Source: Laetmonice hystrix (taxonomy: Eukaryota). Taken from it: a stretch of 64,000 nt of DNA. This document shows positions 12,080 to 63,859 of this stretch, piece by piece. Each line of letters begins with the position of its first letter. Position 1 is the first letter of the stretch. The position numbers were made by a program, and so were the translations under genes. The stretch spans positions 8,804,001 through 8,868,000 of the forward strand of contig OZ249446.1 in assembly GCA_965235115.1 (NCBI GenBank), written 5' to 3'. The notes below the pieces were generated by a model, which was given only the letters and a program-made list of their open reading frames with translations, did not search any database and was not told where the DNA came from.

Positions 12080-12578
12080 CTAATGAGCACCAACGGGCAC
12101 CTCGATGTCAACTTCTCCACGCGAGCACCAAGTAATATCCCTATCACCAGTATTAGCTAGAGATCTATTTCTTCCCAGCGTAGACTGCTGTTGGTTGATC
12201 ACGGCATCCGGGTCTAATTCAAAGTACTGCGCATGCGGTATCTCGCCACTTCCGCTTGCACCTGTCATGTCTCGCCGGTCGAATTTCGGACTCTCGTACA
12301 CGTGTTCAACGTAGCGAGAATCTCGGCCGTCGCTTGACGTGGACACTGGGTGGTACGGAGGCGGGGGTAACTCCGAGCCTTGGATACTGTTTGGTTTCCC
12401 GGATCTTTGTTGTAGCTGCCACGTACGGTAATAGTTATTTTCGCCTGGATTATACAGGTCGAGGTTAGCGCGATCTTTCTCCGGGTCTGTCTGAGCGTAT
12501 GGTCTGGGATCCTCTCCATTGTAACACGACACATGGGAGAAACTATCCATTCCAGCTGGACGCTTTTCTCGACGCTGC
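12080..12578 (-). CDS. Gene A: last exon, cytoplasmic tail with NYYRTW, PPPPY, YVEHVYESP and QYFELDP motifs
   Basis: Acceptor taactgacag|, phase 2, frame continuous with the 156-aa ORF to the stop at 12080. All eight exons total 1578 nt (525 aa). Motifs are shared with gene B. Confidence 0.92.
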
Positions 12579-12834
12579 CTGTCAGTTACATAGCAAGCAT
12601 AGGGAGAGAATCAAAAGGGGGAACTTTTAATACAATTACGGAATTCTTCAAGATGACTCAAGAAAGTGATATAATTAATGTTCGTTCCACTTTTTGCCAA
12701 CTTGAAGTTGCAAATAAACGAAATAATCAATGAAAGCAATTTGCTTTTGATGAACGTCCTTAATGATATTGAAGTATTATATGCCTAATCTAGATTGTGA
12801 TCATGCTAACATTTTGATATACAGATTTACTTAC

Positions 12835-12916
12835 CATTTGAGACAAAGAAGACCACCGACAAGTATGAGGATTCCAACCAAGATGGCCACGCCAATAATT
12901 ATGGCTATCGATATTC
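12835..12916 (-). CDS. Gene A: transmembrane exon (GISIAIIIGVAILVGILILVGGLLCLKW)
   Basis: Acceptor gttgcag| and donor ATG|gtaagt. 82 nt, phase 1 to 2, about 24 hydrophobic residues followed by basic residues. Confidence 0.92.
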
Positions 12917-13268
12917 CTGCAACGTGCATCATTCAAGTTGCTTATAACCACATAAAATGCCTGAATATATGACCATCTTTCACGATCCAATTTTTATGTT
13001 TTCTGCCCAGTTTATAATACATTTAATAATGAGAACATTTTGTACACTGTTGTTTCGACGCTGCAAATACATGTATAAAGCCAATCAGGACGAGATGAAG
13101 ACGAAGATGAAATGCAGATGAAACACTCCCAAAGTCAACCGACTCGATTTCTATATCCTGTTGATAACAAACTTGTAATGCACACCTTCACAGTTCTATT
13201 TGATGATTCGGATGCCGGAAAAACCGACATGAATGGAATAATTGTTGACAGGCGCGTGACTGGCTTAC

Positions 13269-13325
13269 CTTGTGAGGATGAAACGGCATTCCATATTCTA
13301 CCGGAAGCACCAGCGGACGCGGGAA
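13269..13325 (-). CDS. Gene A: 57-nt juxtamembrane stalk exon (VPASAGASGRIWNAVSSSQ)
   Basis: Acceptor ctcttttatccag| and donor AAG|gtaagc. Phase 1-1, open. Same length as the gene B exon. Confidence 0.85.
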
Positions 13326-13628
13326 CTGGATAAAAGAGAAACTAGGGCTGTAAGGAAGGTTTACATGGCGTTCTTATACCGAGATGGTCTTGAATTCAGC
13401 CCGAATATTTCAACATTCAGTTCAATACATATGACAAAAATAACAGGAGTAAAAGTTTGGTCATATTCAAGACGGGGGAAATTATCCCTGAAATCCAATA
13501 AAATGATTGCCCCGGAAAGGATCTATACGTCAGGCACTGTTTGGCTGAAAATGTTTAATGTATTAGTACAAACGATATTGTAAACTGAGGTTCCGACATA
13601 AAAGAGTAAAAACTGAGCTGACACGGAC

Positions 13629-13781
13629 CTCTTGAACAGTTGGCGTACGAGCCAATCCAACTGTTACGGTGACACCTGAGGCGCCATGTCTCGTCTGTCG
13701 CCTCACATCCAACCAAAACGCTGTCTCCTGCACGTTTCACCCACCCGCCGATAGGTGGCGTCAGGTCAGGGCATCCGATGG
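13629..13781 (-). CDS. Gene A: CCP/sushi-like domain exon (IGCPDLTPPIGGWVKRAGDSVLVGCEATDETWRLRCHRNSWIGSYANCSR)
   Basis: Acceptor ttctttgtccttgcag| and donor GAG|gtccgt. 153 nt, phase 1-1. Four Cys with W between C3 and C4. A homologous exon is present in gene B. Confidence 0.88.
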
Positions 13782-13970
13782 CTGCAAGGACAAAGAAGGT
13801 GATGTGTTTCCGATCAAGTATTTAATAAGTATTTCCATTTAGGGTACAAAAGATAATACTCGTTTTATGACGAATAATTGACAGACAGCCCGCATTGGGG
13901 ATAATATAGAATGGACGCCCTTATAGACGTGCAATTTTCCAGCAAACCGCCTCCTAGCGGGAAGCCTCAC

Positions 13971-14378
13971 CTTCAAACTGGAGCATGAAATATCCATGAT
14001 CATCATTTTCCTGCCTCTTCGTGACGATACGTATCTCAACGGTGTTCTCTTGAGACGTGAAGACGTGACTCGTTCTCGAACTGTCTGGGCACACCGTCTT
14101 TGATGACGTCACGCGCCTCTCTTTGATAATTGCGTACACGTGACATGGCGGAGGTAGACCCCGGTGGTCGGCGTCCGTGCGACCTGGCTTCCGGTTAACG
14201 CTATCAAAGTCCCACAGCGTGAGGTTGAGGCGCTGGCCCGGCCTGGCGCGCACTAACCATGGCGTATCAATACTTCCACATCCGGTGTTCTCAGTTATCA
14301 TGCTGGAAATGTATCCCTCCGCCGCCGTAACCTCCACAAAGCTGGCCGACCGGCACTCATCCGGTTTGACTGTCATCA
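13971..14378 (-). CDS. Gene A: CUB-like domain exon
   Basis: Acceptor attgttacag| and donor AAG|gtgagg. 408 nt, phase 1-1. GYISS..GCG...PWLVRARPGQRLNLTLWDF...FTSQENTVEIRI...FMLQFE fits the CUB pattern. Confidence 0.9.
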
Positions 14379-15663
14379 CTGTAACAATAGCGAACACAAT
14401 AAGGAACGAACAGTTGGCCACAGCCATTGAAGTCGGCTATTTGGGAGACGTTTCAGGTATGCGCGTACGTCCTCAGTTGGTCTGTACGGCAGTGGACCAA
14501 CAGGTAACAGACCTGTGTCTCCTGTTAGCACTGCTGTATAGCTTTAATATAATAGTCCTATATATAATAGTTCTTTGTTTGTAGGGCCATTGTTCCCCGG
14601 GTACCCGGGATAATATTCTAACAATATTCTAAAGATGCGGGCAATGCGTAAAACCACCATCCTTTACTTATACGGCCATTGTATGCATATTGAGAGGTAA
14701 TATTTAGCAGAAAGCAGAGACAGAAAGTGAATTTGCTAGGGCTGGCTAAATATAAACGGAAGTCGGTTATGAGGCCCTAACTTGCCGGGGGGGGGGGCAG
14801 AGAGTGGAGAAGAATCTGTTTCCCCCATTGTTTCCGGATATTTCGTATGTTTCGGCCAAAAAGGCCGAAACTGTAAAAGCCCAAAGCAAGAAAGAAATGA
14901 AATGGTCATTTTCAGGGGAGGTAAGCTAGGTGGGCTCCGCGCTGAATCTGCGCCAGACATTTTACCAACTCAGCTGGCGATGGACTAGATATTCATGGAC
15001 CTGTCGAGCACCGTGAAAGTCGCCAGAGGATTTAGAGAGAACCGCCCTTTCTCGGATAGATCCTCAGGGTTGTCAACCCTGACCAAGTCGACGCAAAGAC
15101 CGACTCCGGGCGAGATACCATCATCACCTTGTCTGTAATTATATTGGACTGGCAATAGACAGCGCTGACGTGACGCCATTTGGCGTTGAGAGGGGGCTGA
15201 GATTGAACAGCAGTGAATGGCCAGCGGTGGGCACGGTGTAAGATGTCAGACGTGACAGTGACGGCCACTGCTGATCCCCCTGACTCCGGCGGCAGTTGGT
15301 CGTGTCAAGAGCCGTCAGCAGGGATCGATGGGCGCCCCCTACTGGACTCCCTGGAGACCGAGCCTGACTGACCCTGAAGTGAAGCCAGCCAGACCCGACA
15401 GTCTCGCCCAAACGTAGTACAGCGCTTATGCAGGACAGATAACTAGGAGTTGCGTGATCTGTGAACCCATCGCCTGCATGTAAAAATATTCAACGCCAAG
15501 TTAGGCCTAGGGCCTACAGGGAAACAAACTCATACCCAGTCGCACCGAAATAACCGGTAGACATTCGTGTCGGAAGCTGTTAGATGTTAGAAGGGGTTAG
15601 GACACCTGTCTTTATCAGCATTGGCTCTTTCCGGTGTAATCCGACCAAGGTGGGGGGACTGAC

Positions 15664-15782
15664 CTTTGACACAGGAGTAGGAAGCTTCTAGGAAACTTCT
15701 GAAGTCCTTGGGGCAGGGTTTGCTGGCCCCTGTCAGAAGAGTAGTGACCGGGATCTCACACGACGGCCGGCCCGAACACCAC
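15664..15782 (-). CDS. Gene A: SUEL lectin domain, second half (WCSGRPSCEIPV...PCPKDFRSFLEASYSCVK)
   Basis: Acceptor cgctacag| and donor AAG|gtcagt. 119 nt, phase 2 to 1. Contains the CSG+.SC...PCP....+L..SY.C signature. Confidence 0.92.
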
Positions 15783-16261
15783 CTGTAGCGACACAGACCT
15801 TTTGTAACACAACATTTGGCATATGAGAACACCTAGAGGTACACTGCTAGAACAGCTCTGTTGTAACGTTAGTGGTTCCCTTTGTCTATTATTATGCTCA
15901 CCTGTCGATGGAACATATTTACTGTGTTTTAGTCCATTGTTTGAAATCTTTGTATGAACGTAAGTTGAAAAAGGTCATTCTATTAATTTCTTTCTTGAAG
16001 CATACTATTGACGTTTTTTTATTGGAATGCAAACTAATGTTCTTTTTTTCAACAAGACCAGAATTTGCATGCAATTGCAGTACTGCTGGTTGTGTTGAAT
16101 GAAGGTTCAACATCTTATTCTTGGATCATTATATCCTTTCAATTCTTTGTTGTTCTTTTGTTTTAATTATTGACAATTCTCGGCTTATTTAATCTAGGTA
16201 TATGGTATATTGTCTACTAAAACCTGTACAAAAACGGCTAAACCCATCAACTTCTTCCTAC

Positions 16262-16427
16262 CTGTCGAGGTGTGCCCTGACGTCAATAGCACATCCAATA
16301 TGGCCGTAGTTCCTTGAGACGCAGCGGCCTTCACGCATGCGTCCGTATAGCGCGTGTTGTATGATGATAGCTTCCCCTTCCGGACATGTGGCAGTGAACG
16401 TTTCGTCCTCACAATACTCCGTATTGT
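16262..16427 (-). CDS. Gene A: SUEL/rhamnose-binding (Gal_Lectin) domain, first half (NTEYCEDETFTATCPEGEAIIIQHALYGRMREGRCVSRNYGHIGCAIDVRAHLDR)
   Basis: Acceptor tttcctttattcag| and donor CAG|gtagga. 166 nt, phase 1 to 2. Contains the C.....I.I..A.YGR....C signature of SUEL lectins. Not in the ORF track in this frame. Confidence 0.92.
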
Positions 16428-19400
16428 CTGAATAAAGGAAAACAATACATGTTCACGTATATTGTTACTATACAAGGGGCCAAGTTACTGATATGACAAC
16501 AATACAAGAGGCTCATCACTGACATATTTAAAATCAATACCCTGTCATAATACAGAATATACACACACTTTATCCACAGGTATCTACCGATTGCTTACTC
16601 TGAGCCTGCTCAGATCCCTGTGCAGCTCTAAAGCTCATACGGTAGGGTTGTCAGTAATGCGAGCCTAAAGTCGGTGCACTCGTCCAGCTTACACTAATGT
16701 AACATCTAAGGGGTTGGTGAGGCGGTGGATGAATGCTGCTGCCTCCGGCAGAGCCTATTCCCACTCCGCTTACATCTGTTTCTGCTGCTAGTTGGCACTG
16801 TAAAGGTGACATTCTATCTGCTTGTCATTGGGTCTGCCATCGGCCTCAAAGATCCATTTCCAGCATTAGACTCGTCCATTGGTAACAGGACCAGGGATAG
16901 AGGGCCTTTGTCCGACATAATCGCATAATGGCACTGCACCATGGTCAAGTCAATATGGTGATACCTTAATCGGTAGATGGTTGGACCCTGGTCTGTGATA
17001 TGCAAGTCTATGGAACTGACTTGTAATAGGTGGTCAGAGATGAAAAAAGTATCATACACCTAGTCAATACACCACCTGCATCTCCGAGACACAGTTAATA
17101 AGTAGTGACAGACTTTAGTATTTATGACCCGAGAGCCTCAGTGGGTCGAGTCCCATGGATGGCTGCGATGTCCACTTGAAGTGACCGCGTGCATATCAGA
17201 GACGACCTTTCTTGGGGATACTCGAGTCTGAAGCCATCCCAGGGGGCAGAAGGAGGGAAGGTCCCAGCGGCCACCTCCCGGAATACTCGCATTAAAGGAC
17301 AATAAAGAGATTCAAGGTCAGCACACCGGGCGATTGAGGCTCTCAATTGGGCTCTCAATTGTGGGGCACAATGACTGACTGCTGCAGGCCCGAGGGTCGG
17401 GGGCAGACACCCGGTTCTCATAACCCTGGCGGCGATAGGCAGAATTATGGTCCAGTACTAGCCCCCGAACGTGTCTCCGCATAGACAACGGACAATGGCA
17501 GCCAACTGTTGGCGTAGAAGTTTAAAGGATCAGCTCTTATTGCAGGAAGTTCACCATGAAAGGGACGATGGTGATTTCGAAAGTTTTTAATGGCTTTCAG
17601 TGCGTTTCAGTTTAATTACCAAAATATGGTAGAAATGACATTATAATAAGGAATAAGAAACTGCACGGCATGTATGATATGGGCGTATAGGAGAGCATTC
17701 CTCCTGACCATGCAGTCGGGAGGGCGACCATTCCCACAGACATGGTAGTAATCTGTGTGCTAGCCAATCGTGTAACAAATATCACAGGATCCGGATGAGA
17801 AACCATTGAGATGACCTATGACCTCTCGCGAGTACGTACTCATGAGTTCCGTCGATGCCAATTGTGGCCTTCATAAAACACAGGAAAAAATCGTGATGTC
17901 GAAGGCGGGTCCAGTCAATATTAATGGTTCAACCGTTATCATTTCACACGTGCATTCCTCACGTGCACCACGTGAAGACTGTCGATAGTGACCGATACCG
18001 TGCACACGGGCATGCCCACTGTGGCGTACAACGTGGCCAGCAGAGCATGAGCTTTTATTTTCATTCATTATTTCATTTCATATCCTGTCCCACCGCATTG
18101 CTTAGTTGGCCACGAGTGACTAGACGGTATGATATCGAGGTACCTTTAGCCTCTCCCCCTAACCCCCCGGGACCGTACCCCCCGGCTCAGGGCACCAGTA
18201 TCCGGCCACCAGAGATCAAAAGGACACAAGATGAATATTCCCGGCAAAATTAGAGGTCAGAGGGATCGATTTAATAAGCGGACCTGTAAGCAGCGGGGCG
18301 ATGAACGTGTGACAGGTCCAGTTGATTCATGGCGGCAGGGGAGGGCAAGGAAACGCCGCATGCTAATGACCCCAGCATAATGGCCGTCACCGGCAGATAG
18401 AGGCCATGTCGCCCAAAGACGTAAACCAAGGCCAAGCCTTATTTCAGAGTAATCATTGATTTATGAAAGCTGTCCTTCAGTTATATATGCATTATGACGA
18501 CGGCTCAGACTCTATGACATGTGAAACTGTTGGGGAGCTACCTTCTTTTATGGTCAGAATGAGGGCCCCTGTGTTAAGTTGCAATGGGGATCTTTCCATT
18601 AAAACCACGTAATACTACATCATCGCAGTGGGTAGGACTTCAGGAACAACATGGTCTTTCTGCCATACATCCGGCCTGGTGTGGTACACTATTTGTACGT
18701 TTTTCTGACGTTATTATGACCTTTTTCTGATGTTATTATGAGAATTGAGCCCATGTTGGTCGTCTTTACTCTCAGGTTTGCCTCAGATATGGTGGCATGA
18801 GTGGGTACAGTCCTTGCCGCTTCCCTGCCCTCAACCCCCCTGTCTGCCTGCTTGCCTGCTCGCTTGGTGTCTGAATGATGCTCCGATTGCGTGATCCCAT
18901 TTGGAAGTACAATTATTTCACTCCTGAAGTCCGGTGCTACACAGGGTCATCATCTCCCTGGACGCCATGCCGGTACATACGTCGGTGAATAATTCACGTA
19001 ATATTGATATATTCACTATCCCACACTGGCAATCAATGGTCATAGTTAAAGTCCATGAGTTTATCGGCCTGCCAGTCTGCCAGACCATTTACAGCTGACC
19101 ATAGGTGGCGCTGTGCACGCCTTCCAGTTATCAATTGAAACATAAAAAGACGTATACGTATATGATTTCTACTTTGAATGACATGTCCTTGTGTTGTATC
19201 ATAAAGCCGTGGAACCTGACAAGGAGGCGACGGTGCACGTATGCAATATTGAATAGATGTCAAATCGGGAGTTTATATCCCTTGATCAGATTTCTTTATG
19301 AAACGTGCAATATCCAAGACCAGCGGCTCAGAGATGGAAAATGTATAATCGTAAAGAGAACTGTATAGGTTTCATTTGCCAGCCATGCACGGTATTATGC

Positions 19401-27632: not shown

Positions 27633-30136
27633 GGAGGGCTTCTGGTTTATAATGTAACGTTAGACACTCCACTGAGACTCCATCTCTGAGATGATCTCTG
27701 AGGGCTTCTGGTTTATAATGTAACGTTAGACACTCCACTGAGACTCCATCTCTGAGATTATCTCGGAGGGCTTCTGGTTTATAATGTAACCTTAGACACT
27801 CCACTGAGACTCCATCTCTGAGATTATCTCGGAGGGCTTCTGGTTTATAATGTAACCTTAGACACTCCACTGAGACTCCATCTCTGGGATTATCTCTGAG
27901 GGCTTCTGGTTTATAATGTAACCTTAGACACTCCACTGAGACTCCATCTCTGAGATTATCTCGGAGGGCTTCTGGTTTATAATGTAACCTTAGACACTCC
28001 ACTGAGACTCCATCTCTGAGATGATCTCTGAGGGCTTCTGGTTTATAATGTAACCTTAGACACTCCACTGAGACTCCATCTCTGAGATTATCTCTGAGGG
28101 CTTCTGGTTTATAATTCGACCTTAGACACTCCACTGAGACTCCATCTCTGAGATTATCTCTGAGGGCTTCTGGTTTATAATGTAACCTTAGACACTCCAC
28201 TGAGACTCCATCTCTGGGATTATCTCTGAGGGCTTCTGGTTTATAATGTAACGTTAGACACTCCACTGAGACTCCATCTCTGAGATTATCTCTGAGGGCT
28301 TCTGGTTTATAATGTAACGTTAGACACTCCACTGAGACTCCATCTCTGAGATTATCTCTGAGGGCTTCTGGTTTATAATGTAACCTTAGACACTCCACTG
28401 AGACTCATCTCTGAGATTATCTCTGAGGGCTTCTGGTTTATAATGTAACGTTAGACACTCCACTGAGACTCCATCTCTGAGATTATCTCTGAGGGCTTCT
28501 GGTTTATAATGTAACCTTAGACACTCCACTGAGACTCCATCTCTGAGATTATCTCTGAGAGCTTCTGGTTTATAATGTAACGTTAGACACTCCACTGAGA
28601 CTCCATCTCTGAGATTATCTGTGAGAGCTTCTGGTTTATAATGTAACCTTAGACACTCCACTGAGACTCCATTTATGAGATTATCTCTGAGGGCTTCTGG
28701 TTTATAATGTAACCTTAGACACTCCACTGAGACTCCATCTCTGAGATTATCTCTGAGGGCTTCTGGTTTATAATGTAACCTTAGACACTCCACTGAGACT
28801 CCATCTCTGAGATTATCTCTGAGGGCTTCTGGTTTATAATGTAACCTTAGACACTCCACTGAGACTCCATCTCTGAGATTATCTCTGAGGGCTTCTGGTT
28901 TATAATGTAACGTTAGACACTCCACTGAGACTCCATCTCTGAGATTATCTCTGAGGGCTTCTGGTTTATAATGTAACCTTAGACACTCCACTGAGACTCC
29001 ATCTCTGAGATTATCTCTGAGGGCTTCTGGTTTATAATGTAACCTTAGACACTCCACTGAGACTCCATCTCTGAGATTATCTCGGAGGGCTTCTGGTTTA
29101 TAATGTAACCTTAGACACTCCACTGAGACTCCAACTCTGAGATTATCTCTGAGGGCTTCTGGTTTATAATGTAACCTTAGACACTCCACTGAGACTCCAT
29201 CTCTGAGATTATCTCTGAGGGCTTCTGGTTTATAATGTAACCTTAGACACTCCACTGAGACTCCATCTCTGAGATTATCTCGGAGGGCTTCTGGTTTATA
29301 ATGTAACCTTAGACACTCCACTGAGACTCCATCTCTGAGATTATCTCGGAGGGCTTCTGGTTTATAATGTAACCTTAGACACTCCACTGAGACTCCATCT
29401 CTGAGATTATCTCGGAGGGCTTCTGGTTTATAATGTAACCTTAGACACTCCACTGAGACTCCATCTCTGAGATTATCTCTGAGGGCTTCTGGTTTATAAT
29501 TCAACCTTAGACACTCCACTGATACTCCATCTCTGAGATTATCTCTGAGGGCTTCTGGTTTATAATGTAACCTTAGACACTCCACTGAGACTCCATCTCT
29601 GAGATTATCTCTGAGGGCTTCTTGTTTATAATGTAACCTTAGACACTCCACTGAGGCTCCATCTCTGAGATTATCTCGGAGGGCTTCTGGTTTATAATGT
29701 AACCTTAGACACTCCACTGAGACTCCATCTCTGAGATTATCTCGGAGGGCTTCTGGTTTATAATGTAACCTTAGACACTCCACTGAGACTCCATCTCTGA
29801 GATTATCTCTGAGGGCTTCTGGTTTATAATGTAACCTTAGACACTCCACTGAGACTCCATCTCTGAGATTATCTCGGAGGGCTTCTGGTTTATAATGTAA
29901 CCTTAGACACTCCACTGAGACTCCATCTCTGAGATTATCTCTGAGGGTTCTGGTTTATAATGTAACGTTAGACACTCCACTGAGACTCCATCTCTGAGAT
30001 TATCTCTGAGGGCTTCTGGTTTATAATGTAACCTTAGACACTCCACTGAGACTCCATCTCTGAGATTATCTCTGAGGGCTTCTGGTTTATAATTCAACCT
30101 TAGACACTCCACTGAGACTCCATCTCTGAGATTATC
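27633..30136. repeat. Minisatellite, 66-bp unit, about 38 copies
   Basis: Unit gagggcttctggtttataatgtaaccttagacactccactgagactccatctctgagattatctct. It produces the 22-aa periodic ORFs. Confidence 0.98.
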
Positions 30137-41953: not shown

Positions 41954-42461
41954 ATTCCCTGGTTATAAACCGGACATACAGTGTGAAGGACCTGCATTCC
42001 CTGGTCATAAGTCTGACAGACATTGTGAAGGACCTGCTTTCCCTGGTTATAAACCGGACATACAGTGTGAAGGATCTGCATTCCCTGGTTATAAGTCTGA
42101 CAGACATTGTGAAGGACCTGCATTCCCTGGTTATAAACCGGACAGACATTGTGAATGACCTGCATTCCCTGGTTATAAACCTGACAGACATTGTGAATGA
42201 CCTGCATTCCCTGGTTATAAGTCTGACAGACATTGCGAAGGACCTGCATTCCCTGGTTATAAACCGGACATACAGTGTGAATGACCTGCATTCCCTGGTT
42301 ATAAACCTGACAGACATTGTGAATGACCTGCATTCCCTGGTTATAAACCTGACAGACATTGTGAAGGACCTGCATTCCCTGGTTATAAACCTGACAGACA
42401 TTGTGAAGGACCTGCATTCCTTGGTCATAACCCTGACAGACATTGTGAATGACCTGCATTC
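41954..42461. repeat. Minisatellite, 42-bp unit, about 12 copies
   Basis: Unit gacattgtgaatgacctgcattccctggttataaacctgaca with variants. It gives 14-aa periodic ORFs on both strands. Confidence 0.97.
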
Positions 42462-44540: not shown

Positions 44541-44550
44541 TCTCTCTCTG

Positions 44551-44621
<71 letters not shown>
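44541..44621. repeat. (CT)n microsatellite
   Basis: Direct reading. Confidence 0.98.
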
Positions 44622-47460: not shown

Positions 47461-49130
47461 TAAAAACAGTGCCCTGTTGACTATAAGGTGAAACTTATAC
47501 CTTGACCTGTGACAGGTGAGCGAGTCGCTTTCAACCAGTCTCCGTCCCAGACAACGGTAGAGAGCTCGCTTTTAGTCAAACTGCGTGAACACACCTTCCA
47601 GGGGAGGTCATCAAGACAGGGTCACCGGGACGTGTCGAATGTTTGATAAGAACTCAACATGAATTAGATTAAAGTTATTTCCTTGTGCGGTGTACGCTGA
47701 GTTAATTACTTATATAGGCCTGTCGCAGGTTGGTGGAGGCGGCGTTTATGGGCTATCAGGGGAAGTATTAGTTATAGCTTTGTACACGAGAAAATGTCAC
47801 AATACGTCATATACAAATAGTTCGTATTAAACGATGGAACTTCCACTGAATACACCAGGGAAGGGGATGTTCAATACTCTGGGGTGTTGTAATCGTTCGT
47901 GTGTAGGAGCAAAATCTCGTAAAAAAAACATTGCTAAATTTCCCATTGAAAAAAAATCCCTTTGTAAAATATCGGGAATTTATTACCCCCGAGAGGATCA
48001 TGATAGCTACATGGGATTCCTCATAGCACAAAGAACTCGGAGAAGAAAGGGAAGAAGAAAAAAGCAGGAAACGTCGCCACAAAGAATTAATATATTTAAC
48101 GCAGAAAAAGCTAAATATGCGGTTAAGCTTCTTTATCTTTTAGGTCATATGATGAGGTTTTGATGTTTTACTAAATATCACATAATAAAACAGTTCATCT
48201 ATTCAGGCATATTATCCTGACAGTAATCCTACACCATGGTGTTGTATGGTTACAGATCTACGCCATTCACCTGAGCATATCTCTCTATGCCAGGTAAACG
48301 GTCACTCGATCTCTGTCACAACTGTACTCATGAAGTCAAACTGTGTCACAGTGCCACTCCCTGGCAGTCACTTGAGGAACCCCCATCATGTGCCCGGAAT
48401 ACATTATTCGTGTGCCCTTTACGGCTGATTTCCCTATCGAGTTACCCTGCCTCTCCCTTTCTCTCTCTCTATCTCTTTCACAAAGCTTTAAGGTCTGAGC
48501 CTATACTTGGTGTAACAACAGTCTTAGAATTCAGCTTGTAATGACTGCTTCGCAATTTATCACTAAGGTCCCGAGATCAGTTGAAGAGAAAACCTATTTC
48601 CCTTGATTTAAAGCTGCGGGGCAGCGCGGTCGGTTGTAATTGCCATTTTTGCCTTACCTCCCGCTCAGTAATTTCCCAGAAGGTGAGCAAGGATTTCTCG
48701 TGAATGTGCAAGAAGGTGCGACTGGTTGTTGGTATTCTCAGACAGTGGTTGGCCGACGCCAGGAGGATGTTGGGGCCGCTTAGTAATTCGTCGGACCACT
48801 GGTGGCGCGGATCCGGGGGGATCGAGCTGTCTGTACCGATCAACTACAGCTCGCCACATAGCCTACTGTCTGGTGAGGGAATCTCATGCTCACACTCTGA
48901 GAGACTTGTGGATTCCTTCATTATAGTGAGGCGCGCGCTGAGGTTATTGTCATGCTATAGGACCACGCAAGGCTTCTATACCAACAAGTATTTTTACAAT
49001 CCTTCATTGACAAGAAAAAAGTGCCCGTGTAGAAAGGGAAAGTAACAAGTTTTCCTCTTCAAATAAACGAGGAAACTTGGCTATGTGCAAGGAAAACTTG
49101 CTGGTAATGTACACGGGCAAATCACTCGTC

Positions 49131-49561
49131 AATGAAGACTTGTCAAGGAAAACTTGTTCTTGTAGCATAGGGCACCACACTGTTACAATGAAGACTTGTC
49201 AAGGAAAACTTGTTCTTGTGGCATAGGACACCACCCTGTTACAATGAAGACTTGTCAAGGAAAACTTGTTCTTGTAGCATAGGGCACCACACTGTTACAA
49301 TGAAGACTTGTCAAGGAAAACGTGTTCTTGTAGCATAGGGCACCACATTGTTACAATGAAGACATTTTTGTCAAGGAAAACTTGTTCTTGTAGCATAGCG
49401 CACCACACTGTTACAATGAAGACTTGCCAAGGAAAACTTGTTCTTGTAGCATAGGGCACCACACTGTTACAATGAAGACTTGCCAAGGAAAACTTGTTCT
49501 TGTAGCATAGGGCACCACACTGTTACAATGAAGACTTGCCAAGGAAAACTTGTTCTTGTAG
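49131..49561. repeat. Minisatellite, 56-bp unit, 7-8 copies
   Basis: Unit aatgaagacttgtcaaggaaaacttgttcttgtagcatagggcaccacactgttac. Confidence 0.97.
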
Positions 49562-49979
49562 CTCTTCTCGGAGACAGAGTTGTGAAATAATATTTTATAG
49601 GGAGGAACTCCCCACTTCGAAGAGAGCAAGGCCTATGTTTATTCTCCGATAGATCAGAGGAAGTTTTGTCGGTATGACATCATTGTACCATAAATAATAC
49701 TCAATGCCACATATATTGCAACATATAAAACCACAGACCCTAACGTCAATATCGGTTAATCTCGACAAATTGGTTTTGTAAATGGAGGGAGAGGCCCGCC
49801 CCTCTGTCCGAGCACTTGTCCCGCTCCGAGCACTTGTCTAACCAAGGAGAATGATCTACATACATAGATTTAGGGATGTGTTTGTCTCAATGACAGCCCG
49901 GGCATGAATCCAGATGACCAACCACCCTGTCGACAGCTATACACGCCCGAGAACCAAGTATTTGTTTCTCCTTCAGTCT

Positions 49980-50254
49980 GTACACGGGCGGTCTTAGGGC
50001 CCACCGTACACGGACGGCCTTAGGGCCCACCGTACACGGACGGCCTTAGGGCCCACCGTACACGGGCGGTCTTAGGGCCCACCGTACACGGACGGCCTTA
50101 GGGCCCACCGTACACGGACGGCCTTCGGGCCCACCGTACACGGGCGGCCTTATGGCCCACCGTACACGGACGGCCTTAGGGCCCACCGTACACGGGCGGC
50201 CTTATGGCCCACCGTACACGGACGGCCTTAGGGCCCACCGTACACGGGCGGCCT
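49980..50254. repeat. Minisatellite, 26-bp GC-rich unit, about 10 copies
   Basis: Unit tacacggacggccttagggcccaccg. Confidence 0.97.
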
Positions 50255-51365
50255 GAGGACCCAGCGGAGATGGTAGTGTATTTATAAATCGTGTTGCCAA
50301 TCTGCCAACATCATTCAGGTGAGCCTTGTCGATCGTAAGGGCGCTGGCGAAGAATCTAGATCCTTGACTAATTAATGAACGAGTAGAGCGCCTGGTCATG
50401 AGAAAGATTCACAGTTCTAAAACTGTAAGAGTTAGATCGCCTGCAGAGCAGATGCATTGACAGAGGCATGCAGCATTATATATTTATTTATTTTTTTTGG
50501 GGGGGGGGGGGGGGATCGATTAGAATTAATCCGGGGGTATGAAGTTCATTTTTCGCTTATCTTGATGCGTACGTCTGGATGAACGTACGCTTGTCTGGCA
50601 TGACCATTTATTGCACTTTCAAATAGCGAATGTAGCAGAGCAACGTAGTATCACTTATTCATGTATTTCTTTTCGCTTGCATGTTGGTGGAGGCTCTCCA
50701 GTTACACCTATATGGTAGGTACAGTATCGCATACTGTGAATTTAACCTACAAAATGAACCACATGTGTACAGACAGGCGTCAATATACGTCATTGGTTGC
50801 CTGCCAGAAATCTCAAAGGATAGGAATGAGAGATCTACGCCACTCAGGAGAGAGAACGGTGGATAACACAGACTTGACATTATAGAGTGTTTTAAAACGG
50901 GACGGCTCAGTAACTGTTGTTGCTAATTATGTGCGGTGTTTTATTATAGACCCCGGTCAAGGACATTCACTAAGCCTGACGTCAGATGTAGAGAGCAGAG
51001 ACGGTGGGCTTATATATTAACTAATGATTTCTCCTCGCCGCTTCCAAGGTGTGATATTTTTGTTCACTCTCAGGACAATCTTACATTCATCGTCATCGGA
51101 AGTTAATTCCGCCTGGAGCGTTATGAAATATTCAATATCTCCTCATACATTCGACCTTATCTAAAACTGTATCGCACACCAAAACCTTTTTTTCATCATA
51201 GCAGTATACTAGTCTTGGTTTTCTTCTCTCTGCCCGAACTCTACGTATCAAGTATCATTATGTTCAGTAAAGGCCTTATAACTAACTGTACAAGTAATAA
51301 CAAATAGTTTTTAAAAACAAAACAAAAAAAACAAAAAAAAACAATAGTGGTACATGTCTAAAGGA

Positions 51366-52203: not shown

Positions 52204-52774
52204 TTCCTATGCCAATCTACCTTGAGTACTGTTTTGTATACCATCGTTTCCTATGCCAATCTACCTGGAGTACTGTTTTGTATACCATCGATTCCTATGC
52301 CAATCTACCTGGAGTACTGTTTTGTATACCATCGGTTCCAATGCCAATCTACCTGGAGTACTGTTTTGTATACCATCGATTCCTATGCCAATCTACCTGG
52401 AGTACTGTTTTGTATACCATTGATTCCTATGCCAATCTACCTGGAGTACTGTTTTGTATACCATCGATTCCTATGCCAATCTACCTGGAGTACTGTTTTG
52501 TATACCATCGATTCCTATGCCAATCTACCTGGAGTACTGTTTTGTATACCATCGATTCCTATGCCAATCTACCTGGAGTACTGTTTTGTATACCATCGAT
52601 TCCTATGCCAATCTACCTGGAGTACTGTTTTGTATACCATCGATTCCTATGCCAATCTACCTGGAGTACTGTTTTGTATACCATCGATTCCTATGCCAAT
52701 CTACCTGGAGTACTGTTTTGTAAACCATCGGTTCCTATGCCAATCTACCTGGAGTACTGTTTTGTATACCATCG
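52204..52774. repeat. Minisatellite, 44-bp unit, about 13 copies
   Basis: Unit tcctatgccaatctacctggagtactgttttgtataccatcgat. It gives 44-aa periodic ORFs in all three + frames. Confidence 0.97.
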
Positions 52775-53713
52775 TATACTGAAGTGGAGGGAAGGACGGG
52801 AAGAGCTATATTGACTACGTATTGGTCATATAAACACAGATATCCTATCCTGATTCTCTCTGACCAGAAATTGTAGTGACCCCCCGCCTCCCCCCCAGTC
52901 ACACCGTCAGTACCAGAACTAGCCAATGTAGAACTTCACCACCAGTAGGCTCCGTGACATATTTAGTACGTTTTTCCTCCACCAGGTAGCGTTCTTTCAC
53001 CACCCAAGCAGAATTGATATTATATGGCGTGACTTGTTTATAAACTATTGCCTACCATATATAGAATCGTCTATTATGGAAACGTATGTATATATGATAT
53101 CAGTTTATAGCGTGTCATTGTGAATGGAAATATGTTGTATTCCGTCCTATTAGCAATATGAATTCCTAATGGTTGCTATGCGACCGGAATGTCAAGGGGC
53201 ATATCAGTAACGATGTCCCCGGGTCGATTCAGATCGTCCCGCCAATATCAAACCGCAAAAGTCCTTCCACTCATGACCCTGTCACCACCGGGGCAGACTA
53301 TTTTTGATTGTCCGTGCCGCGGGAGATTTCACGCAGTAGTGAAAACCGTTTCAGCCGTCACAGATGACATGTCTCTTTAGAAGTTCGGTTTAATTTCCGA
53401 CAGCAAACTCGTCAGACAGTGGTGTGTCAGCGGGGGCCAGGAATCGATACACAGGTCTGTCAAACACACACGAGCTCTCCGATTGCTGGTGTAGAAAACA
53501 AACCAGGCAGGGAGGTCAAACCTTCATTGACTTTACTAATAAGAAAAGCATCGCATTCATCAGATCAAAATTCCTAAATAAAACGCCGTTCTTCCTATCC
53601 TGTGGGAGTGTACATCGAACAATGGAGGTTTTCAGTGACGTTTGGGTATAGTATGCGCCTGACACCGCCGCCACTTTCCATAGACTACTCGGGCACAAGG
53701 GGGACCCGACTGG

Positions 53714-53945
53714 CTGGCCGCCGAGACACCACGGGCCGCCGACACCACGGGCCGCCGAGACACCTCCGGCCGTCGACACACCACCGGCCGCCGACACCAC
53801 CGGCTGCCGAGACCCGTGTCGTCGTTAGACGGACGCCAGCCGCCGACACACCACCGGCCGCCGACACCACCGGCCGCCGTCACACCACCGGCCGCCGACA
53901 CACCACCGGCCGCCGACACCACCGGCCGCCGACACCACTGACCGC
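53714..53945. repeat. Degenerate GC-rich tandem repeat, 16-18-bp unit (ccgccgacac[ac]caccgg)
   Basis: Direct reading. Confidence 0.9.
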
Positions 53946-54014
53946 CGTGGGTGGAGGTCTCACGGTACTATACAGGCGGTATATGACCAGAGTAATGTAT
54001 GATGTAAGCCCTCT

Positions 54015-55795
54015 TGATACCGACCGTATCTGGTGATGTTTAGTATGGGAGATGAGACGACCTCGTGATGATACCGACCGTATCTGGTGATGTTTAGTAT
54101 GGGAGATGAGACGACCTCGTGATGATACCGACCGTATCTGGTGATGTTTAGTATGGGAGATGAGACGACCTCATGATGATACCGACCGTATCTGGTGATG
54201 TTTAGTATGGGAGATGGGGCGACCTCATGATGATACCGACCGTATCTGGTGATGTTTAGTATGGGAGATGAGACGACCTCGTGATGATACCGACCGTATC
54301 TGGTGATGTTTAGTATGGGAGATGGGACGACCTCATGATGATACCGACCGTATCTGGTGATGTTTAGTATGGGAGATGGGACGACCTCATGATGATACCG
54401 ACCGTATCTGGTGATGTTTAGTATGGGAGATGAGACGACCTCATGATGATACCGACCGTATCTGGTGATGTTTAGTATGGGAGATGGGACGACCTCATGA
54501 TGATACCGACCGTATCTGGTGATGTTTAGTATGGGAGATGAGACGACCTCATGATGATGCCGACCGTATCTGGTGATGTTTAGTATGGGAGATGGGGCGA
54601 CCTCATGATGATACCGACCGTATCTGGTGATGTTTAGTATGGGAGATGGGACGACCTCATGTTGATACCGACCGTATCTGGTGATGTTTAGTATGGGAGA
54701 TGAGACGACCTCATGTTGATACCGACCGTATCTGGTGATGTTTAGTATGGGAGATGAGACGACCTCGTGATGATACCGACCGTATCTGGTGATGTTTAGT
54801 ATGGGAGATGAGACGACCTCATGATGATGCCGACCGACTGGTGATGTTTAGTATGGGAGATGAGACGACCTCCTGATGATACCGACCGTATCTGGTGATG
54901 TTTAATATGGGAGATGAGACGACCTCATGATGATGCCGACCGACTGGTGATGTTTAGTATGGGAGATGAGACGACCTCATGATGATGCCGACCGTATCTG
55001 GTGATGTTTAGTATGGGAGATGGGACGACCTCATGATGATACCGACCGTATCTGGTGATGTTTAGTATGGGAGATGGGACGACCTCATGTTGATACCGAC
55101 CGTATCTGGTGATGTTTAGTATGGGAGATGGGACGACCTCATGATGATACCGACCGTATCTGGTGATGTTTAGTATGGGAGATGAGACGACCTCATGATG
55201 ATACCGACCGTATCTGGTGATGTTTAGTATGGGAGATGGGACGACCTCATGATGATACCGACCGTATCTGGTGATGTTTAGTATGGGAGATGGGACGACC
55301 TCATGTTGATACCGACCGTATCTGGTGATGTTTAGTATGGGAGATGAGACGACCTCATGTTGATACCGACCGTATCTGGTGATGTTTAGTATGGGAGATG
55401 AGACGACCTCATGATGATACCGACCGTATCTGGTGATGTTTAGTATGGGAGATGAGACGACCTCATGATGATACCGATCGTATCTGGTGATGTTTAGTAT
55501 GGGAGATGAGACGACCTCATGATGATACCGACCGTATCTGGTGATGTTTAGTATGGGAGATGGGACGACCTCATGATGATACCGACCGTATCTGGTGATG
55601 TTTAGTATGGGAGATGGGACGACCTCATGTTGATACCGACCGTATCTGGTGATGTTTAGTATGGGAGATGAGACGACCTCATGTTGATACCGACCGTATC
55701 TGGTGATGTTTAGTATGGGAGATGGGACGACCTCATGTTGATACCGACCGTATCTGGTGATGTTTAGTATGGGGGATGAGACGACCTCGTGATGA
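54015..55795. repeat. Minisatellite, 54-bp unit, about 33 copies
   Basis: Unit gataccgaccgtatctggtgatgtttagtatgggagatgagacgacctcatgat. Confidence 0.98.
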
Positions 55796-55854
55796 CATAT
55801 TTATGGTAATTACGTAACGGCAGCAGGTTATCTTCTCTGTCAGATTCCGACAGT

Positions 55855-55872
55855 TCTCAGCAGGGGGCGCTA
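55855..55872 (+). promoter_or_regulatory. CTCF-like motif (tctcagcagggggcgcta)
   Basis: Close visual match to the CTCF core CCASYAGRKGGCRS. Binding is not demonstrable from sequence. Confidence 0.35.
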
Positions 55873-58800: not shown

Positions 58801-59131
58801 AACCAAAGAACTTTGGCTAAATCAGCATCCGTATCATTTCACATTGCGTACAATAAAAGTACGCCATTGATGGGACCAGTTGCTTTGTTGAAACTCCTCC
58901 AGAGAATCACTTGGACCTGGCCTAGGTCTACGCCCTCCGAACTCTCACTGCTTGTCGTGATCCTCAATTTTAACGGCAGGTTTCGTACCTGCCAACACAT
59001 TTATAATAGACTCTATGTCATCATTAGTTGTCGCGCCGAGAGACGGCATTCAGAAACCTTGGCAATCACCCCGGTTAACTGTCTACGTCCATCCTTATAT
59101 CCGCGTCGCGTCTCTCACTAAATCCCGTGAT

Positions 59132-59639
59132 CTATGACGTATATGATCCCGCTGAATTATTTTTGGTATCATGAACATTCATGCCTGGAAATGAGCATCT
59201 TTGACTCGGCATGGCCGAATTTGTCTGGCTGGAACTACTTTCTCCATTGGTGGTATTTTTCCTTGGGGTGAAAACCTCTGCTTCTGGGTCCAACTCGTAA
59301 TACTGGGCGGGATCCTCAAACTCGGACACATCTCGTCTGTGAAATGTGGGACTTTCATAGACATGTTCCACGTAGCGCACGCCGTATTCGCCACCGTCGG
59401 GTTGAGTCAAGGAACCCAGCTGGGATTCTGCCGCCATTGTACCGACTTCCGGTACGGGTATCGCCGGCGGACGTCCCTGCCCGTGACGATGTAGTTCCCA
59501 GGTCCTGAAGTAGTTGTGTCCGCCATTGTTGGCTGGGTTCAGTAATGTGTTGTTCTTGTTGACATCTCCAGCCTCCATTACATTGGTACATGGAGACCCA
59601 CGCTGACTCGGGGTACGCCGAGTGGTCCGAGTCCATTTT
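59132..59639 (-). CDS. Gene B: last exon, cytoplasmic tail with NYFRTW, YVEHVYESP and QYYELDP motifs
   Basis: Acceptor ttttgcttctcctcag|, phase 2, continuous with the 173-aa ORF to the stop at 59132. Confidence 0.92.
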
Positions 59640-59898
59640 CTGAGGAGAAGCAAAATATTATCATCATTTTAAAAGCTAACATTGTTTATATCAAAGACAG
59701 CATTAATTCACCAAATGGCGGAGCCGCCCTCAAGGAGGAGAAAAAAAAATAATTATGACAATGTTTCTGGACAGAAAAAATATGATCTTAACGACCATTC
59801 CCTGACCGGTAATCAATCGACAATAACCAGTAAAGAACTGCAGACAGTTATACTATGTCGTTTGTTTTAAGGATCAAACAGGTGAAAAATATGCTTAC

Positions 59899-59980
59899 TT
59901 TCTCAGGCAAACTACTCCTACGACGAGGATGACGAGCGCGATTGCCATGGCTACCAACGCAATAACCACAATGGATAGAT
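59899..59980 (-). CDS. Gene B: transmembrane exon (DLSIVVIALVAMAIALVILVVGVVCLRK)
   Basis: Acceptor ttgtccttccag| and donor GAAA|gtaagc. 82 nt, phase 1 to 2 as in gene A. Confidence 0.92.
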
Positions 59981-60321
59981 CTGGAAGGACAAATATTACT
60001 TAGATATTGTCAGGTCGTGTTGGTGGTATACCTGTCGATCAATACATGCAGGGCCCTCTGATATAGGAGATGTCAGAAAAATCTAATAATCCTCTTGGAG
60101 AGAAAATGCTCTCAGAGAAAATGCTTTTACAGTCCCCTTTACAGTTTTTTTGGTCAATGTTGCGCTTCTTGAAGCCGTTACGGCCCTAAAGGAAAGAATG
60201 CGGATGTAAGTGCCGGCTTATCTTATACTGAAAACACGCCATTAAAAAAAGGAGGATTTATTTTTAATCTTCTTTATAAAATGCGTGCCTCTAAGTGTGG
60301 GAGTGTGTTGGACGAACTCAC

Positions 60322-60378
60322 CTGGGGACAGAGAGAGGATGTTGTCAAGGACCCCAGCCGCATTCGTCCGAGCGTGAG
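60322..60378 (-). CDS. Gene B: 57-nt stalk exon (AHARTNAAGVLDNILSLSP)
   Basis: Acceptor ttgttatttcacag| and donor CAG|gtgagt. Phase 1-1, same length as in gene A. Confidence 0.85.
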
Positions 60379-62290
60379 CTGTGAAATAACAAGGAATATT
60401 ATGGTCACACTGATGACACCTTACTGAGAAAAATGTATACTTTCATTTAACATAACAAAGAAAAAGCTTTGACAATTTTTCCATTTCAACTGTCAGATCC
60501 GACACTTTCTTTGTCAAAGTCAAGTTACATTTGGTGTTTACTTTTGGATATCATCCATGGGCGTTCGCAATAACCGAACCTTTTATTGGCAAAAACACAC
60601 ATCTCCGTAATCGAAATTGGCGTTTAATCACTGCAGAGCGAGTCGTGCCTTCAACATACTCATCCCCATAGTGCATTTATGTAATGACGAAAAAATAAAT
60701 ACAGATGATAAGTTTTATACTGCTTTGGGAGTGTTTGGATGTGTGTGAAAAACAGACAAGAAATGTGACTGATCAGACGTAGATGAAAGAAATCAATGAA
60801 CCGCTGTTATTTTCAGTGCCGCCACTGAAGCTGCCCAGATCCCGGCAGTCCCAGATCACGGTTTCAAAGCTTATGTTTTCATTAAAATATAGGGTTACGT
60901 CGCGAGCCGGGTGATTATGCTAAAGCGCCACATGCAGATTCGCATGCGAAACGCGATTACAATCCAGGCTCTCCTCGCTGATTTTTTCCACCATCTTTAA
61001 AAAAAAGCCATTATGGGGAAATGCTTCCATAGCCAACTGAAGCAACGGTAAGGCAGCAGCTGACGTTGAGGGAGGGGATTAGCTCTACCAAACGCTTTTT
61101 GTAACAGTGAGGTTGCATTAAAAGTTGTTTTGTTAACGAAAGAAGACTCAGTGTGAAATCTACTTCAAAGCTCAATGTTGTGAGCAGCAGACGAAACTGA
61201 TCGCTTTGTTTGTATTTCCACGGCGGTAATGTACACCCATCTGTCGGTAGAACAAACTGTTCCCTGCTATACAGAGTGGGTGGGGGTAGGGTGGGGTCCT
61301 TCCTGGAATCTCTCCTCTACCATACAAGACTTGGGGTTTTCTATTATGTTAGTAGTGGAGTCATAAACGACACAGTTTGAGGTGGGTGTGTGCATGTCTG
61401 TGTTCAATATATCTTATATATTTCTTTTATCCAGACTTGCCCAAAAAGCAAAAATTGTGAATCAGTTTTAAATAAATAATTGGAATAACAGGGGATATTC
61501 TAGGATTTCCATGGCACGGTAGTGATCGCCCTGATTTATTAGTGATTCACATGTTATTTGTGTTTGTAAAGGCCGATTCAAGTAACACCGGCGCGCGTTC
61601 TAGTCGGCTTGCCTCGTCATCATTACAGAATCGCATGTCGTCATCAGCGGGCAGACGAAAACACACGAACCTGATGCTTTGTCGTCATCCGTCCTCTCTC
61701 TCTAAAACATTCCTAGGTTTTGAGTCGAAACATTGTGTGCGAAGTGCGATCAATTAATGGCGACATTAAATTGGTAATTTGATCTCTTTCTCTGTTGGGT
61801 TTGTCGTGGATTTGTTTTCCGAGCACTACGTGTCTCGAAGTTTACCTGTTCCGCGAAGCGTGTCGGGCAGACATCGTCATGCCGCCACAATACTGACACG
61901 GCAGGCAACTAAGCATGTGTTTACGAACCCCAAAAAAGGTGTTGGCATGCTTCACCTGATCCGTGGGTATAGCCATACTGATAACGAGGCCGTTAGTTTT
62001 TTCATCACTAAATGATTTTCGACATTTTTTAAGAACGAATCTCCTGTTTATGCATGATGATTAATCTAGTCGGAAAGATTCTGGGTAGCGCATACTGACT
62101 GATGTTGACTCATATTGACTGGCGACGATGGGTAAGTTATAGGAACCATCTTCATAGGACTTCGTAATGAGGAAACCAGACTTTGCTCAATACTAGCACC
62201 AAAAGTGGTAACATTATAACGTTTTGTGTTGTTTTTCATGCCCTATTAAAGGCCCTATAGAATGAGAGAAACATAATTATCGTCCAATTC

Positions 62291-62444
62291 NNNNNNNNNN
62301 NNNNNNNNNNNNNNNNNNNNNNNNNNNNNNNNNNNNNNNNNNNNNNNNNNNNNNNNNNNNNNNNNNNNNNNNNNNNNNNNNNNNNNNNNNNNNNNNNNNN
62401 NNNNNNNNNNNNNNNNNNNNNNNNNNNNNNNNNNNNNNNNNNNN
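62291..62444. other. Assembly gap (N run) inside a gene B intron
   Basis: 154 N bases. Confidence 1.
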
Positions 62445-63703
62445 TTCTCCCCTAATTGTCGATAAGTCTCATACATTTCGCAAAGCGGGTCAAATGACAA
62501 GGTGAATCAGGTGTCCAAATGAAGTGGGCCTAATTGAACCTATTAAATGAATTCGATTATTCTAATCTTTACAAAAATTAGAATGACCGGAAAATGCATA
62601 ACTTTATCATCATAATGGTAAAGACAAAGGCGTAGCTTTCATTATATACGGACATAATACGTACTTTTCCTCTCAGGTAGCATAGGCCGTAAGCTATTTT
62701 GTCCCTTGTATTTGCATTAAAGCTACCCATGAAAACCAAGACTGTAACATCTCATCACAGACACACCATGTACCAGAGTGAATTTGTACCTTCTCTCAAA
62801 AAATGACGACGTGCCTTCAGTCATTAGTAAAGCTGTTAAGTTCAAAGTCGTACCGTTTGTTTGATCTTATACATACGAGCGCGAAAGGTACAGTACCAAC
62901 CAACAGTAATATTATCGTAACACGTAGAAAAGAGCAGAAAAAGACAGGGAGCACGGAGCACAAGGGTCGACCCGTGCTGGCCTCTTTATCACAGACCTTC
63001 TCTTTATGTATACCCCGTCAATAACTAACAAAGACAAAATATTGTATTATGACCTAGCAGTCCGTCAACGAGGCTTACCCAAGGAGTTCTCTCCCTCGTA
63101 CACACACAAACACACAAATTAGATTAAGATTTAATAAAGTAAATAAATAAAAATGAAATAAATATGAAATATCTGCCTGGTATTACCAAGCTTTAATATG
63201 TTTCTGCTGTGGAGCGTAAATGGCATACCTGGTCGCAGGAAATTGTTCATTTAAAACAGCTTCTGAATCTTTCTTTGATCTGTTCATTTAAAACAACTGC
63301 TGAATAGTTCTTTGATTGGAAGTGCCAGACACAATCGTAATATGTCACACCTATTGACATCCGCCATATTTGTTATCGTTTTGAAGATTCCATATGTCGC
63401 ATAAAAGAATATGAGAGAGTCGACCATGATCTATAAATTATACCCATCACTGACTGAAGAACAGGCAGGGAGTATCAATTTTTAGCCGTGTCAATTTTTA
63501 GTCCAGCAAATTGCATTATGCCAAACTCAAGGTTACGTGCAGTATATAATTCATAACGCGACACCTAAATATGGCTTCCTGTCCTTTTCGTATGTCACCG
63601 ACTTCCTAACATAATTATTCTCGCCATTGTGATGAAAATCTGCGGGTTTCCTCACCGCCACGGCTCCTTATAAGGTAAGTGATTGCAAGCAGTGAAAACC
63701 TAC

Positions 63704-63859
63704 CTCCAGTACAATTGCCTGACTCTCCGAGCCAACGGTTGCCGTGACAAACCAGCTTCCAGACTTTCTCAGGCCGTCCGCAGCCTATTTCCGCCTTCTT
63801 GTCACCGTGCATCTTCACCCAGCCGTGGGCAGGCTTCTCAGGACGTGCGCAGCCGATGG
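63704..63859 (-). CDS. Gene B (paralog of A, 5' exons beyond the window): CCP/sushi-like exon (IGCARPEKPAHGWVKMHGDKKAEIGCGRPEKVWKLVCHGNRWLGESGNCTG)
   Basis: Acceptor tttgccgttacag| and donor GAG|gtaggt. 156 nt, phase 1-1. Aligns with the gene A exon (IGC, GWVK, GC, W.L.CH.N.W.G, NC). Confidence 0.9.

Follow-up and report, generated by a model that had tools for sequence, protein, structure and literature searches.

What do a pair of related genes in a 64,000-nucleotide stretch of the Laetmonice hystrix genome encode, and is the protein family to which they belong already recognized? The stretch, hereafter the window, comprises positions 8,804,001 to 8,868,000 of contig OZ249446.1 in assembly GCA_965235115.1 (G000:C12:8804001-8868000 in our own numbering of this animal assembly of 627 Mb and 35 contigs), and positions given below are those of the window unless another contig or flank is named. 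Both genes, which we call A and B, lie on its minus strand, ~42 kb apart. They are two intact, anciently diverged paralogs encoding type I single-pass membrane proteins of an annelid family, and of this gene and family identity we are highly confident. Read from the outside in, the predicted ectodomain consists of a SUEL/rhamnose-binding-type lectin, a divergent CUB domain, a compact 48-residue CCP (sushi) module, and a short Ser/Ala/Gly stalk, after which come one transmembrane helix and a cytoplasmic tail of ~165 amino acids (aa) with three conserved tyrosine motifs. We count gene structure, folds, family membership, copy number, and purifying selection as demonstrated.

Gene A was examined by three-frame translation and scripted exon joining. 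Across its span (minus strand, 12080-16427), seven internal junctions are all canonical AG/GT, every acceptor AG is preceded by a pyrimidine tract, every donor is GT, and the reading frame runs uninterrupted between the lectin and the stop codon. An earlier note on this DNA, made from the sequence alone, had reported an uninterrupted spliced frame for gene A, and these junctions together with the open frame bear it out; the 525-aa length given there becomes 520 aa here, with a candidate signal-peptide exon included. The exons of gene A are, in the order of transcription:

17620-17698, minus strand: candidate exon 1, with an ATG and a hydrophobic signal peptide; 79 nucleotides (nt), ending in phase 1.
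16262-16427, minus strand: first half of the SUEL lectin; 166 nt; matches positions 2-29 of the Pfam SUEL_Lectin profile and is colinear with homologs.
15664-15782, minus strand: second half of the SUEL lectin; 119 nt; matches positions 46-80 of the same profile, with tblastn matches.
13971-14378, minus strand: CUB exon with a variable loop; 408 nt; identified by structure prediction, family profile, and conservation in the related-species contig L045.
13629-13781, minus strand: CCP (sushi) exon; 153 nt; identified by structure prediction, invariant Cys and Trp residues, and conservation in L045.
13269-13325, minus strand: stalk exon; 57 nt, phase 1 to phase 1; AG/GT borders and open frame.
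12835-12916, minus strand: transmembrane exon; 82 nt; hydrophobic helix, transmembrane profile E 7e-11.
12080-12578, minus strand: last exon, encoding the cytoplasmic tail; 499 nt including the stop codon; three conserved Tyr motifs.

Within the 11 kb scanned upstream, candidate exon 1 is the only plausible signal peptide with both an ATG and a phase-1 GT donor, and it joins in frame.

Gene B had been described in the same note as a same-strand paralog with matching 3' exons, and so it proved: the CCP, stalk, transmembrane, and last exons of A and B measure 153/156, 57/57, 82/82, and 499/508 nt, respectively, in the same phases. The part of gene B that falls inside the window is made up of:

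63704-63859, minus strand: CCP exon; 156 nt; 43% identical to the CCP exon of gene A, with tblastn matches to homologs.
62291-62444, no strand: assembly gap (N run) in the intron between the CCP and stalk exons.
60322-60378, minus strand: stalk exon; 57 nt; the only 57-nt phase-1 candidate with a strong donor (CAG/GTGAGT) and a pyrimidine tract.
59899-59980, minus strand: transmembrane exon; 82 nt; transmembrane profile E 9e-12.
59132-59639, minus strand: last exon, encoding the cytoplasmic tail; 508 nt including the stop codon; tail profile E 3.5e-36.

The gap is the sole N run in the window (GC content 45%) and sits in a 3.3-kb intron, its nearest exons being 1.26 kb and 1.9 kb away. The exons around it join phase 1 to phase 1, and the alignment of A with B has no missing residues there. 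In five family genes with this type of tail, the distance from the CCP exon to the tail exon is 1-4 kb, and gene B lies within that range. Extending the sequence, as the earlier note had proposed, recovered the 5' exons of gene B in the flank (L013), 3-8 kb past the window, with the lectin at 8127-7843 and the CUB domain at 4387-4155 and 3464-3290 of that flank; the joined protein, exon 1 excluded, is 497 aa long. The paralogy of A and B is real, since the two proteins align colinearly from end to end with 42% identity over 483 aa (E 1e-117); their tails are 40% identical over the motif region. Only the four 3' exons share their structure between the two genes, because the lectin and CUB exons are split differently: gene B has its lectin in one exon and its CUB domain in two, whereas gene A has its lectin in two and its CUB domain in one. 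The lectin of A is split by a 479-bp intron, and a single exon encodes it in B and in almost every other copy; the CUB domain, conversely, is divided at its variable loop in B and in at least five further units.

We then considered the domains themselves. The order lectin-CUB-CCP-stalk-transmembrane-tail, as first put forward, stands, the lectin being identified by Pfam and PDB matches and the CUB and CCP by their predicted folds. Recognition of the individual domains succeeded for the lectin by Pfam and for the CUB and CCP folds by structure prediction, on which the calls for gene A's own CUB and CCP exons depend, Pfam failing to recognize either exon. The single lectin exon of gene B scores 43.2 bits against Pfam SUEL_Lectin (PF02140; gathering cutoff 31.4), while the two lectin halves of gene A, scored separately, cover complementary stretches of it at 18.7 and 15.3 bits. 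The gene B lectin also matches the solved L-rhamnose-binding lectin 5h4s (E 2e-12) and the lectin domains of latrophilin (E about 1e-6). The lectins of both A and B keep eight cysteines, the YGR motif, and the Glu that follows the first Cys, as seen in the translations and in the alignment to 5h4s and latrophilin.

For the CUB domain, the Pfam profile (PF00431; cutoff 21.4 bits) recognizes the first CUB exon of gene B at 21.9 bits and the homologous region of a homolog, P0080, at 25.7 bits. A profile built from 60 family CUB sequences and run against the PDB returned CUB-containing chains only, the best being cubilin (E 2e-4). The AlphaFold (AF2) model of the gene A domain has a predicted local distance difference test score (pLDDT) of 90, and its best CUB match by Foldseek has an E value of 3.5e-4. 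Among the top 50 VIA matches to this model, all are CUB domains (Z 7.2-9.1), led by CUB2 of MASP-1 with Z 9.1 and a root-mean-square deviation (rmsd) of 3.0 over 98 residues. Cysteines C9, C79, and C97 are conserved in the family alignment, and the fourth Cys lies within a conserved GCG motif. When the family profile is aligned to cubilin, the Glu that serves as calcium ligand (FDLE) meets a variable column that is not acidic (Val in A, Pro in B), and the position of the Asp in C-x-Y-D-Y reads C-x-V-Y-A; judged from this sequence alignment, the domain is probably a CUB without the usual Glu/Asp/Asp triad of calcium ligands. Residues 60-82 form a lower-confidence loop that varies in both length and sequence across the family. 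A conserved N-glycosylation sequon, N-x-T, was also noted in a CUB strand (GQ.IN.TL.DF).

The CCP model of gene A (AF2) has a pLDDT of 91, and the top 50 VIA matches to it are all CCP/SCR modules (Z 4.4-5.6, rmsd about 2.1-2.5, over all 50 residues), among them modules of MASPs, CD46, CD55, CR1, factor H, and selectin; the leading Foldseek matches are likewise CCP modules. C3, C25, C36, C48, and W41 are invariant in 43 aligned CCP exons, as is a Gly. When the family CCP profile was run against the PDB, the top match was a sushi domain of CSMD1, at a non-significant E of 1.2, and Pfam Sushi was not found in ten full-length homologs at E<=0.01. The module also carries the family-conserved N-glycosylation sequons C-N-x-T and N-C-S/T, and the conserved CUB and CCP sequons would fit an extracellular glycoprotein.

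Both A and B have a single transmembrane helix and then a tail with all three tyrosine motifs. These motifs, ENxYYRTWQL, EH[IV]YESPKF[DE]R[RK]D, and YFELDP, vary little or not at all among 11 sequences from across the annelids. The tail is disordered, with conserved YxxP- and YxxL-type tyrosines. A genome search with the tail of A alone turned up 5 copies; with a cross-species profile of the tail the number was 10, all of them downstream of lectin-CUB-CCP units. Matches to the tail in the ESM Atlas were all sub-threshold, with scores below 0.8.

How widely is this build distributed? An exhaustive HMMER search with the CUB exon of gene A returned 1416 representative proteins at E<=1e-3, mostly exon-sized open reading frames (ORFs). 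Relatives of about 460-650 aa carry a SUEL lectin ahead of the matched region and are colinear with all domains of A and with its tail, and several full-length relatives, on contigs of ~2 kb, align across the predicted junctions of A without gaps; contigs of this size fit mRNA-derived (transcript) assemblies. The family range given here was drawn from the HMMER representative search together with cluster look-ups, because the other homolog searches, made with a full-length relative, a profile, and an ectodomain region, returned only 3-5 proteins each. In the ESM Atlas, the nearest clusters have Annelida as their commonest phylum. Among AlphaFold DB clusters, the top matches bear the names "SUEL-type lectin" or "CUB domain-containing", and by length and name the best fold matches (TM scores 0.78-0.83) appear to be the Capitella family members P0155 (507 aa) and P0156 (427 aa). 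As far as can be seen from these sequences, the family looks annelid-restricted.

The best named relative is UCK81578.1 (P0003) of Arenicola marina, deposited as "Gal-binding and CUB domains containing receptor 15"; the remaining named relatives, from Capitella teleta, Paralvinella palmiformis, and Helobdella robusta, are hypothetical proteins and likewise all annelid. The suggestion in the earlier note that similar proteins might sit unannotated in invertebrate proteomes was thus overtaken, the Arenicola protein being already named in GenBank and the Capitella, Paralvinella, and Helobdella predictions being of the same build. UCK81578.1 has the same order of lectin, CUB, CCP-like module, transmembrane segment, and tail, has all three tail motifs in common with A and B, and matches the coding exons of A colinearly by tblastn, with the short stalk and transmembrane exons as the only exceptions. 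It aligns to A in order (aa 15-76, 42-114, 111-249, 250-300, and 359-469), with the CUB domain at E 1.5e-30 and 43% identity and the tail at 44% identity over 114 aa; it differs in coming from another species and is probably a different paralog. The Capitella, Paralvinella, and Helobdella proteins (ELU10135.1, KAK2147095.1, ESN90600.1, and others, labeled "SUEL-type lectin domain-containing") have a homologous CUB exon and, where full-length (about 460-625 aa), the same architecture; they are automatic predictions only, and most of their CUB and CCP regions lack annotation. It follows that A and B are new members of a named annelid family. A paper describing the family was not found by full-text searches with the Arenicola family name and with the domain combination, and no documented function for it was found in the literature searched; one hit, PMC13094222, was rejected as a family paper, having matched through "j.cub" DOIs only.

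Within the L. hystrix genome, matches number 57 for the CUB exon, 53 for the CCP exon, and 60 for the lectin exon, and at least 49 units have lectin, CUB, and CCP in order and on one strand, on contigs C12, C2, and C30. Seven of these lie within 8.79-9.07 Mb of C12, including A, B, and a plus-strand member upstream of the window, so that the expansion proposed in the earlier note is upheld both genome-wide and locally. In a maximum-likelihood tree of 25 CUB domains, which is star-like, with a median terminal branch of ~1 substitution per site and only 2 supported forks, all that can be read is that A and B do not group as sisters and that no single species-specific clade unites the copies of this genome. 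The third local member (L014 3246-8398; G000:C12:8793246-8798398, plus strand) lies 5.6-10.8 kb upstream of the window start and has a SUEL lectin exon (41.8 bits by Pfam), a CUB-like exon, and a CCP-like exon; neither L014 nor the window yielded its transmembrane and tail exons. One further C12 unit was seen at 10.68-10.70 Mb. The densest arrays are at 6.10-7.30 Mb and 13.78-14.54 Mb of C2 and at 18.00-18.21 Mb of C30, with ~17 units in 1.2 Mb of C2; these arrays are much denser than the cluster around the window.

Comparison with a related species bears on whether the genes are maintained. The genomic contig L045 aligns to the gene A region over the CUB and CCP exons only (14384-13966 at 70.6% nucleotide identity and 13794-13634 at 68%), within a few bases of the predicted exon ends, and the flanking introns are unalignable. 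For the CUB exon, the rate of nonsynonymous substitution (dN) is 0.19 and that of synonymous substitution (dS) is saturated, the replacements falling mostly in the variable loop; the exon is, by this estimate, under purifying selection.

The proteins share parts with several known systems. In MASP-1, -2, and -3, C1r, and C1s, CUB2 is followed directly by CCP1, as in A, and these proteins are among the best structural matches to both exons; A and B differ from them in having no EGF or serine-protease domain, in being membrane-anchored, in their N-terminal lectin, and in two of the three CUB calcium ligands, which alignment suggests are non-acidic. Membership among the complement proteases (CUB1-EGF-CUB2-CCP1-CCP2-serine protease) was rejected, EGF and protease exons being absent and the CCP being followed by stalk, transmembrane segment, and tail. 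The latrophilins (ADGRL1-3) and EVA-1/EVA1C are, like A and B, membrane receptors with an N-terminal SUEL/rhamnose-binding-type lectin; the former differ as seven-transmembrane adhesion G-protein-coupled receptors with olfactomedin and GAIN domains, and EVA-1 differs in having two lectin domains and neither CUB nor CCP. Membership in EVA1/FAM176 was also rejected, since A and B have one lectin with CUB and CCP, and their tail has no Pfam match, EVA1/FAM176 included. SEZ6 and CSMD combine CUB and CCP modules in a single-pass membrane protein, as A and B do, but they have many alternating repeats, no lectin, and a different tail.

What might such proteins do? Taken as a whole, an annelid family of lectin-CUB-CCP receptors with a signaling tail is the explanation that we consider best and moderately probable. 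The extracellular ligand of the ectodomain would be a glycan, bound by the lectin, or else a protein, bound by the lectin or by the CUB-CCP pair. Once a ligand is bound, the tail tyrosines (YxxP, YxxL) would be phosphorylated and would recruit SH2/PTB adaptors inside the cell, a chain of events that we put forward tentatively and think somewhat less probable than otherwise. With its many diverged paralogs, the family would cover a range of ligand specificities, as recognition receptors are expected to do. The glycan sensing proposed in the earlier note, with a role in immunity, symbiont recognition, or cell guidance, is conjectural. A more specific form of the proposal, in which the family would be an annelid-specific, diversified repertoire for immunity or allorecognition, with the variable CUB loop as specificity determinant and the three-tyrosine tail module as signaling output, seems to us unlikely as it stands; in that case the loop would sit where canonical CUB domains have their calcium and ligand site, and the tail module (ENxYYRTWQL, EHIYESPKF, YFELDP) may be previously undescribed.

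Several observations weigh against the explanation of A and B as lectin-CUB-CCP signaling receptors. Exon 1 of gene A is a guess. No transcript evidence for A or B was found in run searches with the 5.9-kb gene and with the last exon; these searches matched three runs of one study, none recorded as RNA, which cover 83-99% of the 5.9-kb stretch and are presumably DNA, since the introns are included in the coverage. Pfam CUB gave no match to gene A's own exon, and Pfam Sushi (PF00084) none to A or B, at E<=1 in each case. The structural match scores of the CCP are modest (Foldseek E >= 0.025, Z <= 5.6), as expected because the domain has only 50 residues. A tail of the A/B type is detectable in only 10 of the 49 units, it has no match in Pfam or, by profile search, among solved PDB chains, and its tyrosine motifs are not canonical immunoreceptor tyrosine-based activation or inhibitory motifs (ITAM or ITIM). 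Finally, DPC has become KPC and x-K-Y-L has become R-S-F-L in the lectins of the window's proteins, and family-wide the D of DPC is K, N, or Q and the K of KYL is S or G, giving a consensus of xPC...R-G/S-Y/F-L.

These last changes touch the nature of the ligand, since DPC and KYL are the motifs that we take to supply the sugar-binding Asp and Lys in rhamnose-binding lectins. Because DPC and the Lys of KYL are replaced, whereas YGR and the N-terminal Glu are kept, protein binding, as in latrophilin or EVA-1, is on sequence grounds as plausible for this lectin as sugar binding, to which it is the main rival. The latrophilin lectin domain binds teneurin, and Caenorhabditis elegans EVA-1 binds SLT-1. 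Were the lectin to bind protein in the same manner, A and B could be adhesion or guidance receptors through which cells recognize one another or the matrix, whether during development or in the nervous system, an alternative that we find doubtful but worth weighing. It gains from the replacement of DPC and of the Lys of KYL throughout the family, from the latrophilin lectin domains being the closest solved relatives after the fish rhamnose lectins, and from the CUB-CCP pairs of MASP, C1r, and C1s being protein-binding modules. Yet the YGR motif and the N-terminal Glu are retained, the adhesion or guidance role has no known partner, and ~50 highly diverged paralogs with a variable CUB loop suit a recognition repertoire better than a conserved guidance system.

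The same diversity of paralogs could instead serve recognition of mates or of environmental cues, by gamete-recognition or chemosensory surface proteins. Nothing beyond the domain type (SUEL, with its sea-urchin-egg context) and the large, diverged family points that way, and known gamete lectins are mostly secreted and conserved cytoplasmic tyrosine motifs are atypical of them, so that we regard this as very improbable. That either gene, or both, is a silent or decaying member of a large family, as the failure of the run searches to find RNA and the in-frame stops in a few other genome copies might suggest, is scarcely credible given frames that are fully open over 7 or more exons with canonical splice sites and, for the CUB exon of A, the low dN against saturated dS between unalignable introns.

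The stretch between the two genes is rich in tandem repeats. A minisatellite of 38 copies of a 66-bp unit at 97% identity (27634-30136) is the source of artefactual minus-strand ORFs of 265 and 509 aa, and five more arrays (54015-55795, 52204-52774, 41954-42461, 49088-49562, and 49980-50263, with units of 54, 44, 42, 56/112, and 26 bp, respectively) include several that yield long spurious ORFs. The long ORFs at 27.6-29.9 kb, 41.8-42.5 kb, and 52.2-52.8 kb were accordingly rejected as genes, being minisatellite artefacts. A (GA)n/(CT)n microsatellite at 44500-44600 and a GC-rich 34/52-bp repeat at 53516-54036 account for spurious ORFs that overlap on the two strands. The remaining long ORFs of the stretch separating A from B had no meaningful Pfam match, and a tRNA scan was empty.

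The result is mainly one of correct annotation: the genes are real, the domain calls hold, two of them needing structure prediction, and the family is already named in GenBank. The automatic label "SUEL-type lectin domain-containing" misses the CUB domain, the CCP module, and the tail motifs of a family that is conserved across Arenicola, Capitella, Paralvinella, and Helobdella. Innate recognition receptors of annelids are poorly known, and a family of ~50 members is a candidate repertoire for tests of ligand binding and signaling.

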